A stretch of 64,000 nt of DNA, taken from positions 8,742,001-8,806,000 of the forward strand of contig OU015566.1 of NCBI GenBank assembly GCA_907165135.1, in the 5' to 3' direction. Positions within the stretch are counted from its first letter, which is position 1, and every line of letters starts with the position of its first letter. The notes under the pieces were generated by a model that saw only the letters and a program-made list of their open reading frames with translations, was not told the origin of the DNA and made no database searches. This document shows positions 60,046 to 64,000 of the stretch, in pieces. The stretch comes from Oikopleura dioica. Taxonomy: Eukaryota; Animalia; Chordata. The translations under genes and the position numbers were made by a program.

Positions 60046-63000
60046 ATGAGCAACGTGCTCGTCCAGCACAGTCATGACGTGAACTGCGTTGCTGTTTCGA
60101 AGGCAAGATTTTTTTTTAAAACCCTAGTTTTTAGGTGAATAATAATCCCTTTGAATCAACACTGGACTGCATACACGTGTAGTATTTTGCGGTTGTCGGG
60201 CTTAATTTTTCCGTGCTCTTGTTAATCCACCCCAAACGTGAGCCCCGTGCAAATACGTATACTTTCAGTAGATTCAAAATGGAACATTCGCTACGCTAGA
60301 CCAGGCCATTTAATGACAGAAGAAATTAAAGTGCGTATTCTCCAGGCTGGGCCACGTAGCAATTGAATAAATAACTCGTCACTATTTCTTCGATTCAATT
60401 TAAGTTTTGAAAATCGATTGAAAGGGAAATATCTTTTATGGCTGCTCCGACAAAACGCTCTACAAAAGAGATGATAAGGGAAGTTGCCAAGAAGTTCATA
60501 AACACAGTCAGATTGTGACATGCTTAGGCTTTGGTTCATTTAAGCTACTGTAACTCATAAGTTTGCAAAAGTAACTGTACTACTGTCAGGTAGACGATAA
60601 CGGACACTAATCCGGAAGGTCCTTTCCGGGAAGTAATTTATGCATTAGCGTAAATTTAGGTTACTTCAGCTGCTTTTTATAATCTTCCAACAAAGTGACT
60701 CTTGATTTAATTAAAAAGAGATGGTCCGTTTTTTTTCAATAGCCATAATTTTTCAATATCGTTATTTTCCTAACAGTAGTTTTTTCATCGAAAGAAACTT
60801 TTTCGATGTAAATTATGATTAACTTACGTATGGAATGCACGGCGAACCTTGTTTACAGATCACGCTGACGGACTCGTGGTTTCCGGCGGACTAGATGGAA
60901 ATGTGAAGACCACAGATGGCATCGAATTCGCCTCGAAGTTGATTGTAGTGAGATCTATTGCACTCCATCGGAGCGGGAAAAAGATCGCCGTCGGAGGCCC
61001 TGATGGGCAGGTATCGGTAAGTTATGAAATCAACCAAACCAATGTCTCGTCTATTTTATAAACAGATCTCATTTCCTAATCATGCCACCAATTCAGGGCA
61101 CCGTGAATGATGCAAATATTTAATATTCGTCCAATCTTATATTATATAAGTTATACATCCAGCGACGGTAAAAAGCAAAATATATTTGGAAATATTTTAG
61201 AAGAACAGTTGGACCGCCGGAATTTCCGGTGCGGTGATAGATTCAGCAGGAAAAAATCGGTTTTGATTTTTTCGAATTGAACCGTTCAATGAATTAAAAC
61301 ACGTTTAAGCTCTTCCGTTTTCATTCACACAACAATATTTACGCGTTTGAATAAGTTTCTGTTTAAAAGCGAATGCGTTCCGAAAACAATTAAAAAGATA
61401 AGCCCAATTTCCTTTTAACCACTTAGTTCACCTAAATATGCGTCCTTCCGTATGGCTTGAAAAATTCAGAGTTTTGTTTAACACTCATTAGATTTGCCTT
61501 ATTTCCGCGCATCCCCCGATGAGAACGGTTGCGTTTCGTTATTTCCTTTGTTTAGTTTTAGAAATTTTTGCCGACTTTGGTGATATTTTTCTTCAGATTT
61601 TGGATACCTCCGGTCGCTGTCTTGAGTCGTGGGAGGGCCATTGTGATGGTACCGTCCACGCGTTGGGATGGTTGGGAAACTACCTCGTTACCGGTTCCGC
61701 TCTCGGTAAGACTTTTAATAGCACCATCTTGCATAAGTTCAATTTCAACGCTTTTGCTTTCTGAAATTGCATTTAAAATGTAGATTCTTCACGAACTCTT
61801 TCGGGGGCGTCTGGTTTGGTGGGCCAGGACGTGGCAGGGACACGATAGGTCTTGATAAATCGTCAGGCTGTGTTCAATTCCCAACCAAGCATATGTGTGG
61901 TAGACGTTCTAACCCACATAGTCCGAGTCTGTGAAGCATTGATGTTGGAACCAGTACTCAGTACTGACTAGTGGTTCCTTCTATCTATGTGGAGACATAA
62001 TAATAGACTTAGTATACCCTTCTCTCTTGAGAAATCCTCCTCCACAGCTGGGTACCTGGGATACCCAGCAAAGTGCCCAGTGATGTCGTAGGCCTAGACT
62101 CACTGGGACTTCTGGCTAAGATGGAATGTCGAGGGAAAATGGGAAATCTCCTCGATATAAAAAAACCGCAAATGACGATGAGTCTCACCAGCTCGGGAGG
62201 TTCTTTCGGGTCCCCAAGAAGGAGGATGAAGGATCTTGACACTGCCTGGACAACAGTGAAAAGTCCGATGAATCTTCCGCCGCTCGAAAGTTTTGTATTA
62301 ATTTTCAATAGAAGCAACAATCGTTTCAATTAATTTTAACATGAAAAAAGTTTTCGTGACGGGCCGCTATTAACAGCACGATGCTTCCTGTCTTCTAAGC
62401 ATCAAATATTATTACTTAGTCAGCACTCTCTTTTTACGAAACATGACTGTTCAGGAGATTTACGAATCTGGGAAACGGAAAAGAAACGGCGTCTTCTTGC
62501 CAGCAAAACGAGTATACATGACAAGTCCTTTTCCGGATGCGGGACATTGGCGCTTGACACAAATCCAAATAAAAGTCACATCGTTACAGTCGGAGCAGAC
62601 AATCTTGGCCACATTTGGTGGCTCAATGAGTCAGGTGAGTTTTGCCTCTTTCTTAGGGAGGATTAGAATCGCATGCTTTCGGCAAATGGAATGATATTTT
62701 CGAGTGTTACAAAGCTAAATAACTAAATACGGCTCTTAACTATCATGCGTAAGCGTGACTTTTGTCAAGTGCTTTTAGAAAACTATGAGATCATTCGTTT
62801 GCAAAGTGTTTGCAAAAAGTTATTTTATTAATGTCTTTTTTGAGCCAATGAGTTATTAAAGAGCGTTCTAAAGCTCCGTGCCGAAATACGCAATAAATAT
62901 GAAATAGGCGTAATCCTGCTCTCCTTTGTTAGCTGAGTCCATCTAAGATTAACTGTAGATATGATTATCCATTTCCAAAATAACGATTGATGTAGGACGT

Positions 63001-64000
63001 CGGCCATGTATCGATCTGGTGCTAAACCTGCGAAGCCACACTGCGCCCGTGAATTGCGTGAAATATTCACATGATCACTGTCTTATTGCTACCGGCTCAA
63101 TCGACAAGGTGCCTTATTACACAATACATAATATATATTATGAAGAGAATATGAAATGATAAACAAAAGTAACATCGCTCCTAGAATATTTGCATTTGGA
63201 CAGCAGCAGATGGAGCCCTTATCCGACAGATTGAGCAGCACACAGGCTCCGTTTTGTCACTTTGCTGGAATAGAGAGTCGACATCGGTCATTTCAGGTAC
63301 AATTTGAATAGGTGAAATAACGGGTCAAGCTGTTTCATACCAAGTTCACGTTTTTCTTGCATAACTTGAAAACGCGTTACCTGGAGTTATGTATATCTTG
63401 AAATCAGCTCGGGAATACCTCTGTCGATTCTCGTGGATTTTTATAAAATTCACATGTTGAATGAAATTATTATTCCTGGGCTTATCTTAGGATTTCTTCA
63501 GAAATACAAATCCATTTTTCTCGATATCAGCAAACCAGACGCGGTTTCATTTTGGAACCTAGAGTCACTACGGCCTGTCAAAATTATTTGATAACATGCT
63601 ACCCGGCACCTTGTTGAGCCACCTTTGCTTAGAGCTCTTCGGCATTTGAGAGTTGCGCCTAATATAGAAATTTACAAACTCTTGAATTAGCTCATCAATT
63701 TCTCAGGTGGTGCTGACAAGACGGTGCGGCGGCTGTACATCCAGAGTGAAAACGTGGCCGAGCCGCCGGAATTATGCTGCCCGATCACACATTCGCTCAT
63801 GCTAGACTGTGTCACTGCTGATGACGGGAACAACTACTCCAGAGCCGGCATCGAAGAGTGGTTTTCAAAAGGTAAAGAAAGAGTGGAATAGATTCATTAG
63901 AGCGGAAAGCCGGGACTTAGCTACGTAGCCCACTGATTCTCACTGATTATTTAGCCCAGGTTTCGGTCAGATACGAAACTCTTATCTGTGCTAAGCCAGT
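60046..64000 (+). CDS. WDSUB1: WD40 + U-box protein (WDSUB1-like), 3' end outside the window
   Basis: HSHDVNCVAVS, LVVSGGLDGNV, LVTGSALGDLRIW, IVTVGADNLGHIW, GGADKTVR, and U-box PPELCCPITHSLMLDCVTADDGNNYSRAGIEEWF. Confidence 0.8.
61798..62294 (+). ncRNA. Candidate intronic highly structured RNA (unassigned family)
   Basis: About nine hairpins with G-U pairs favouring the + strand, pairing of the two ends, and a following T4 run, all inside WDSUB1 intron 61706-62454. Confidence 0.45.

Follow-up and report, generated by a model that had tools for sequence, protein, structure and literature searches.

Within a 64,000-nucleotide (nt) stretch of the genome of the chordate Oikopleura dioica (assembly GCA_907165135.1, contig OU015566.1, forward-strand positions 8,742,001 to 8,806,000; hereafter the window, whose own numbering is used throughout), an intron of a WDSUB1-like gene harbours a densely folded block at 61798-62294. 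The reading that we favour, with a confidence somewhat better than even, is that this element is a plus-strand gene of RNA polymerase III (Pol III) type for a structured non-coding RNA (ncRNA) of ~330-500 nt, with a tRNA-derived head and an anatomy like that of a short interspersed nuclear element (SINE), which has been kept by selection; its transcription, polymerase, ends and function are what we infer from the DNA. The block has a definable structure, is conserved between lineages, has accumulated compensatory changes with a bias towards one strand and carries promoter-like motifs. An earlier note on this DNA had proposed that the block might be an undescribed structured ncRNA, a ribozyme or an RNA-based mobile element, and the first of these proposals is now backed, on the plus strand, by orthologues, by domain-wise conservation and by compensatory, strand-specific changes that are compatible with G-U pairing.

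On the plus strand the 497-nt block has a predicted folding energy of -174.9 kcal/mol, far better than that of 100 dinucleotide shuffles (z -3.79), which is the comparison that the earlier note had suggested. When 254 segments of this length are tiled across the 64 kb, none has a lower energy than the block, which also ranks first of the 254 when folding energy is regressed on GC content, standing at -2.7 standard deviations after this correction. All ten of the local stems described previously fold as hairpins, of 4-15 pairs, and both of the long-range pairings proposed alongside them can form; most of these hairpins fall in a central domain that is not conserved in sequence, hairpin number or length. 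The proposed pairing of the block's ends (61798-61809 with 62278-62290) stands in part, in that it forms 12 pairs with one bulge at -16.8 kcal/mol, but its inner GGCG/CGCC part is specific to the window, and the conserved part in other lineages is the outer CUUUC/GAAAG, with three further pairs possible. The TTTT said to follow the paired ends is present at 62291-62294. The box A/box B promoter and the conserved helices P2, P3 and H3, which are described below, did not feature in the earlier note.

The host intron, 61706-62454 on the plus strand, is genuine, having GT..AG ends and interrupting a WD repeat between TGSALG and DLRIWE, and the WD-like exons together with a Pfam U-box that lies 3' of them (63691-63888) fit the WDSUB1-like host gene that had been suggested. 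Related DNA was sought with the host exons as separate queries, one by one. A full scan with the downstream exon led to P0001, an open reading frame (ORF) called on the marine metagenome contig L001, and the cluster members of the ORF matched by an upstream exon led to L008 and L009, both of which cover the entire intron; word-based protein searches with single exons or with P0001 gave few relatives, and the useful contigs came as cluster members. A further contig, L002, holds the final ~45 nt of the element and the downstream exon. The comparison set was therefore made up of the window, three full contigs (L001, L008 and L009, hereafter the trio) and the partial L002. The host exons of the metagenome contigs are 91-95% identical to those of the window, from which we infer that the contigs represent diverged Oikopleura lineages. 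P0001 itself (L001:2430-2963, 177 amino acids (aa), held in a public collection) is a gene-caller artefact, its frame running from the element through the intron into the WD exon. Pattern scans of JGI metagenome DNA (three matches, L003-L005) and of IMG/VR DNA (four related GC-rich viral contigs, L012-L015) gave matches that we judged to be chance.

In each of the five lineages the element lies in this intron, always in one orientation. Similarity between the window and the trio opens at CTCTTTCGGGG and closes at CTCGAAAGTTTT, and these edges coincide with the ends of the element; the flanking intron is only 46-54% identical to that of the window and unalignable with it. Conservation within the element follows its domains. 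Between the window and the three other full lineages, the ~90-nt 5' domain is 75-83% identical and the ~75-nt 3' core 84-91%, and the last 11 nt with the T run are 100% identical across all five lineages, L002 included; the corresponding values against the window are 31-46% for the central domain and 39-54% for the 3' hairpin H4. The central domain also varies in length (256 nt in the window, 179 in L001, 168 in L008 and 94 in L009), with element lengths of 331-497 nt. Among the members of the trio, orthology of the flanks is clear (62-87% identity), and the central domain and H4 diverge at the pace of the upstream flank. Single-nucleotide indels occur within the conserved blocks, also between the close relatives L008 and L009, so that these blocks are neither exons nor coding; the ORFs of the element (106 aa on the minus strand and an open frame of 100 aa on the plus strand) have no Pfam match and are not recorded as genes. 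Every orthologue folds far better than its shuffles, that of L001 with z -4.05 on the plus strand, and the same holds for the central domain and H4 even where their sequences cannot be aligned.

Consensus structures drawn with RNAalifold from the four full sequences and from the trio gave the same plan, the parts of which are listed in Table 1. In the trio, 95.7% of the cells of the consensus are paired, compared with 93.7% in shuffles, a level reached by 3 of 500, and six pairs have changed on both sides, compared with 2.3 in shuffles (again 3 of 500) and 0-1 in slid controls. Compensatory change is clearest in the hairpin that opens the central domain: its loop is CCUAA or CCUAU, and its stem reads AGCG/CGCU in L001, GACG/CGUU in L008 and AAUU/AGUU in L009. 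The central domain as a whole folds with z-scores of -2.8 (window), -4.75 (L001), -3.4 (L008) and -1.6 (L009). H4 is a stepped hairpin common to the window, L001 and L008 but built from different letters, with GGAGGAU/AUCUUCC, GAUC/GAUC and GAUUUC/GAAAUC respectively as its base helix and GGA/UCC, GGAU/GUCC and AGAU/AUCU as its second helix; in L009 it is degenerate.

The way in which pairs vary also distinguishes the strands. Among the core pairs that vary, 12 are kept and 6 broken on the plus strand, while the best consensus obtained for the minus strand itself keeps 7 and breaks 15. The kept changes are mostly from C-G to U-G or from A-U to G-U, which the opposite strand would see as A-C mismatches, and so the preference for the plus strand that had been argued from G-U pairs is borne out by the changes that keep pairs. 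Three columns of H1 alternate between C-G and U-G, compatible on the plus strand only, with a 1-nt indel opposite a bulge; H3 is 98% paired and shows five one-sided, G-U-compatible changes; and P3 has changed from A-U to G-U in L009. For H4 the z-scores on the plus strand are -2.7 (window), -3.4 (L001) and -3.7 (L008), and those on the minus strand -2.4, -1.0 and -0.5. Taken together with the strand-biased keeping of pairs, these scores point to constraint on a plus-strand RNA rather than on a DNA palindrome.

Table 1. Parts of the element and neighbouring features, in window coordinates
Feature	Position	Strand	Remarks
Upstream host exon	61597-61705	+	WD repeat, ending TGSALG; 84-92% identity to L001
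TATA-like box	61772-61779	+	TTTAAAAT; about 25 nt 5' of the block (25-30 nt across lineages); sequence match only
Whole conserved unit	61798-62294	+	Presumed Pol III transcript of 493 nt plus T4 run
P1, 5' strand	61798-61802	+	CUUUC; pairs with GAAAG 62286-62290 (RNAalifold); 95% of cells paired
P2, 5' strand	61803-61808	+	GGGGGC (GGGG(A/G)C); pairs with GUCCCC 62210-62215; 100% paired in four lineages; A-U to G-U change
Hairpin H1	61809-61831	+	All cells paired; box A match TGGTTTGGTGG (61812-61822) in loop and 5' strand
Hairpin H2	61837-61876	+	GGACAC...GUGUUC; outer helix invariant; 3' strand opens box B match TGTTCAATTCC (61871-61881)
P3, 5' strand	61878-61883	+	UUCCCA (UUCCC(A/G)); pairs with UGGGAA 62140-62145; 100% paired; closes variable domain
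Central hairpin-rich variable domain	61884-62139	+	Unalignable, yet strongly folded
Conserved 3' core	62140-62215	+	P3 3' strand; A-rich single strand AAAAAAACCGCAAAUGA (62159-62175); H3 (62176-62208); P2 3' strand
3' hairpin H4	62221-62278	+	GGAGGAU...AUCUUCC base, GGA/UCC, apical CACUG/CAGUG
Invariant 3' end	62279-62290	+	Holds P1 3' strand; CCGCUCGAAAG (62280-62290) identical in five lineages
T4 run	62291-62294	+	Pol III terminator-like; T5 in L008; first plus-strand TTTT since 61752
Downstream host exon	62455-62636	+	Begins DLRIWE; handle for finding orthologous contigs

Promoter-like motifs were sought as box A (TRGCNNAGTGG) followed by box B (GGTTCRANTCC) at 30-75 nt. The element has box A at 61812 with two mismatches and box B at 61871 with one; the corresponding mismatches are 1+1 in L001 and L008 and 2+1 in L009, box A reading TGGCTTGGTGG in L001, L008 and a second copy in L002 (see below) and box B reading TGTTCGATTCC in the other lineages. 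With at most two mismatches in box A and one in box B, this combination occurs a single time in both strands of the 64 kb (128 kb), and that occurrence is the element. The first 30 nt resemble the 5' half of a tRNA, with a 7-nt G-rich strand, 2 nt, a 4-bp stem and a 7-nt GG loop, the head containing a D-arm-like UGGU/GCCA helix and box B a T-loop-like UUCRAUU. Equally far upstream of the block, the other lineages carry AATAAAG or TATAAAA in place of the window's TATA-like box; matches of this kind arise easily in AT-rich introns. At the other end, a run of four or five T stands straight after the conserved end, following the last pair, in five of five lineages, and none of the four full lineages has an internal TTTT on the plus strand, compared with 3-4 A runs in each. 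Such a layout is in keeping with a gene of Pol III type 2 that has an upstream element in addition.

Were this the case, Pol III would transcribe the element independently of the host gene. TFIIIC-type recognition of box A and box B, aided by the TATA-like box, would place the start near 61798-61803, and transcription would stop at the T4 run at 62291. The RNA would close on itself through two helices of its 5' end, P1 with the invariant 3' end and P2 with GUCCCC in the 3' core, and it would contain H1 and H2, P3 enclosing the fast-evolving hairpin cluster, the A-rich single strand, H3, the long H4 and a U tail. Judging by this anatomy, its likely role would be that of a ribonucleoprotein (RNP) scaffold, in which the conserved single strands and the U tail may serve as protein-binding sites.

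There are several observations that weigh against such a gene. The minus strand of the block also folds well (-163.9 kcal/mol, z -3.28), as does that of the L001 element (z -3.8). When all four full sequences are used, the shuffle control is not significant, with 94.5% of cells paired compared with 93.4% in shuffles (12 of 500) and a covariation level reached by 138 of 500; in this test MAFFT cannot align the middle of the window's element, and most core pairs never vary. Enforcing P1, P2, H2 and P3 costs just 0.8 kcal/mol in L008 and 3.4 kcal/mol in L001, but 15.3 kcal/mol in the window and 8.7 kcal/mol in L009. For the G-rich and C-rich strands there are several possible partners other than those of the consensus, and the majority of core pairs do not vary at all; P2 in particular is weakly informative, because its pairs are mostly invariant and its G run could pair elsewhere. 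The absence of internal TTTT is weak when judged by dinucleotide shuffles (P 0.60, 0.18, 0.14 and 0.065). The L009 block opens with TTTT at its extreme 5' end, which suggests that the RNA may start after CUUUC, later than 61798, in which case P1, already carrying one U-to-C break in this lineage, would be lost there. Conservation within introns is not unique to the element, as the neighbouring intron carries conserved blocks too. The full sequences number only four, three of them close relatives, and the organism behind the metagenome contigs is judged from exon identity. Finally, the second copy in L002 fits a mobile family.

The matter of copies bears on the alternative that we take most seriously. 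Within the window there is no second copy by blastn or by a covariance model of the 5' domain (R1). This model matches the four orthologues and, in addition, L002:503-530 (E 0.007), where it is cut off by the end of the contig. L002:490-530 is the start of a second copy, which lies in the intron that follows the counterpart of exon 62455-62636 and includes the upstream TTTTTCGCGTC motif; the same intron holds no second copy in the window or in L001. The unit has therefore duplicated at least once, and duplication at the DNA level fits better, because TTTTTCGCGTC was carried along and an RNA copy starting at the head would lack it. The flanks, ending in CGAACT and beginning with GTATTA, share no target-site duplication, and there is no A-rich or repeat tail, the 3' end being CGAAAG followed by T4.

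We weighed the gene reading against a decaying SINE, a structure that serves splicing and the known RNA families, and prefer it on that basis. The main rival, which we regard as unlikely although it deserves real weight, is a tRNA-headed, SINE-like non-autonomous retroposon, either a copy or a master, in which the head and tail are kept for recognition by Pol III and reverse transcriptase and the body is swappable. It would account for the head with box A and box B, the layout of head, variable body and conserved 3' part, the sharp edges of similarity between flanks that cannot be aligned between the window and the other lineages, and the second copy that begins in the next intron of L002; SINEs are also on record in assemblies of O. 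dioica, at under 0.1% to 0.6% of the sequence (PMC8008620). It is less easily reconciled with an element whose intron, orientation and offset do not differ between five lineages, that ends in its own terminator rather than in a target-site duplication and an A-rich or repeat tail, and that has no other copy in the 64 kb, the one second copy including TTTTTCGCGTC. Moreover, in the trio, whose flanks are orthologous, pairing in the central domain and in H4 has survived changes on both sides, as it would not in dead copies. The RNA-based mobile element of the earlier note may apply either as this rival or as the origin of the element.

The remaining explanations appear considerably weaker. The block could be a cis-acting structure of the host pre-mRNA, for example one that joins the splice sites of a long intron, or an RNA excised from a spliced intron of an RNA polymerase II (Pol II) transcript and having no promoter of its own. 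Its intronic position on the sense strand, its pairing ends and the conserved non-exon blocks of the neighbouring intron would all be in keeping with this, but the closing helices leave out the splice sites, with 92 and 160 nt of unconserved intron outside the element, and the conserved pair of box A and box B unique in 128 kb, the T run at the edge in five lineages and the lack of internal T4 would go unexplained. Given also that one lineage has a further copy in a different intron, we think this quite improbable. Even less probable, to the point that we give it hardly any weight, is a DNA-level palindrome (a miniature inverted-repeat transposable element or foldback transposon) or a set of chance hairpins with no role as RNA. 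Such a palindrome is suggested by the good folding of both strands, by loopless perfect palindromes such as 61947-61978 and by the window's central domain, where the minus strand folds slightly better. Against these must be set a terminal inverted repeat that is conserved over 5-8 nt only and lacks target-site duplications, substitutions that keep pairs on the plus strand via G-U and break them on the minus strand, an H4 that is stable on the plus strand only in L001 and L008, and conservation that is domain-wise rather than just terminal. Very unlikely too, if marginally less so, is membership, masked by extreme divergence, of a known family that has so far escaped detection in Oikopleura, for example 7SK or telomerase RNA. 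In a general way, the element is like such RNAs in its size, its U tail, the closure of its ends and its rapidly evolving middle. Set against this are the results of family searches in four lineages, to which we now turn, and the promoter, which is internal (type 2) in the element, whereas 7SK genes use an upstream type 3 promoter.

A search of the whole window with Rfam at gathering thresholds gave chance lines only, as did a search of the element in four lineages at expectation values (E) up to 10, with no tRNA, 7SK, telomerase RNA, RNase P/MRP, signal recognition particle (SRP) RNA or vault RNA; the earlier note, which could match no complete consensus of the families that it considered, is in agreement with this. 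Among ribozymes (hammerhead, hepatitis delta virus, twister and group I/II), the only match was a 22-bit chance one to the atpF group II intron model in AT-rich sequence at 62319-62354, outside the element. The suggestion of a ribozyme, or of a stack resembling P4-P6 of a group I intron, found no support, and the pairing on which that likeness was drawn (61988-61994 with 62040-62046) sits in the non-conserved central domain. ARAGORN found no tRNA in the window, L001, L008 or L009; there is no cloverleaf, and the 5' G run finds no partner in the strand that follows the T-arm-like hairpin. For RNase P/MRP and SRP RNA there is no Rfam match at E up to 10 in the four lineages, and an RNase P CR-I-like AAGGUCCGAGA and an SRP-like CUCGGGAGG were dropped as being in the wrong place, unconserved or without a model match.

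The two families that might have been missed were considered in their own right. The telomere repeat of O. dioica is TTAGGG (PMC8008620), of which the element has no conserved complement of at least 8 nt; the one candidate is CUAACCC (7 nt, 61910-61916), which belongs to the central domain that is not conserved and lies half within a stem, and the orthologues have the 5-nt CCUAA or CCUAU loops. Telomerase RNA is listed as not detected in tunicate genomes (PMC8704543). Similarly, a homology search of O. dioica did not yield 7SK (PMC5006418). The element has no Rfam match to it and no 5' hairpin with paired GAUC, GAUC/GAUC pairing being confined to H4 of L001 and L009. Vault RNA was set aside on length (331-497 nt for the element) and for want of an Rfam match, although box A, box B and a panhandle are present. 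Vault RNA loci are reported from tunicate genomes on the strength of homology searches (PMC8704543), and these presumably lie elsewhere than the element.

Some further observations concern the element and its surroundings. The invariant 3' CUCGAAAG can pair alternatively with an internal CUUUCGGG at 62203-62210, which could be a switch. In the upstream exon, 23 nt at 61656-61678 are 74% complementary to the box B/P3 region at 61878-61900 (GGATGGTTGGGAA and TTCCCAACCAAGC); this complementarity is perhaps due to chance, and may otherwise permit the exon to pair with the element in the pre-mRNA. About 25-30 nt past the terminator, L008:2576-2620 and L009:1686-1730 contain a CTCTTTCGAG or CCTTTCCGAG motif that is like the 5' start of the element and complementary to its 3' end, and this could be the remnant of a tandem copy or a downstream hairpin. 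In the intron upstream (61041-61596), a block at 61190-61250 is ~90% identical across eight loci (TTTTAG/AAGAAC...GGACCGCCGGAATTTCCGGTG...GATTCAG) and reads as a WD-like peptide, KNSWTAGISGAVIDS, which makes a micro-exon the probable explanation, one whose donor may not be GT, and the host gene model needs revision. Further non-exon blocks of that intron, at 61385-61434 and 61468-61596, are about 78-92% identical to L001 and include the 130 nt before the acceptor at 61596; these could be regulatory elements, small exons or another RNA. At L009:760-850 (about 61250-61340 of the window) the trio has an inverted repeat with weak matches to microRNA models (19-22 bits, E 0.8-3.6), far under gathering scores.

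Returning to a Pol III-type gene as the favoured reading, it is instructive to compare the element with RNAs of known anatomy. BC1 of rodents is a host-retained Pol III RNA that arose from a tRNA-type SINE head, and BC200 of primates is its Alu-derived analogue. The element shares with them a 5' domain that derives from a tRNA and bears box A and box B, a 3' part that is unique, a terminator of oligo-T type, a single conserved locus in each lineage and perhaps kinship with a mobile family, whilst it is 2-3 times longer, closes its 5' end onto its 3' end, contains a large variable hairpin cluster and lacks the central A-rich linker of BC1. With vault RNAs, which are of Pol III type 2 with upstream elements, it shares box A and box B preceded by a TATA-like box, a panhandle of the 5' and 3' ends, a centre that varies and a terminator in the form of a T run, though vault RNAs measure about 90-140 nt and none of their Rfam models matches the element. 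Like tRNA-derived SINEs it has a box A/B head, D-arm-like and T-arm-like hairpins, a body built of modules and, in one lineage, a second copy, but unlike them it has no target-site duplications and no tail that is A-rich or evidently like that of a long interspersed nuclear element, and it has its own terminator, one orthologous locus and compensatory evolution after the lineages split. The likeness to 7SK lies in a presumed Pol III origin, a length of some hundred nt, a U tail after a 3' hairpin, a 5' end paired close to the 3' end and poor conservation outside short blocks, and the difference in the lack of an Rfam match, in the absence of a 5' hairpin with GAUC repeats and in the internal promoter.

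Oikopleura has one of the most compact and fastest-evolving of animal genomes, its introns turn over quickly, and 7SK and telomerase RNA have not been found in it. A candidate structured RNA of 0.33-0.5 kb that has kept its place in one intron, across lineages in which neutral sites are saturated, is therefore likely to be of importance to the animal. More tentatively, and with a confidence that falls a little short of even, we suggest that the element may belong to an undescribed Oikopleura RNA family, made by Pol III, self-closing and 330-500 nt long, with a tRNA-derived head, an invariant 3' end and fast-evolving hairpins, which would have been selected over tens of millions of years as an RNP scaffold. 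Such an RNA could replace an unfound regulator such as 7SK, or could be the domesticated founder of tRNA-headed units. With a candidate promoter, candidate ends and a conserved core, the element offers a clean case for how a tRNA-derived Pol III unit may turn into a host gene or stay a parasite.

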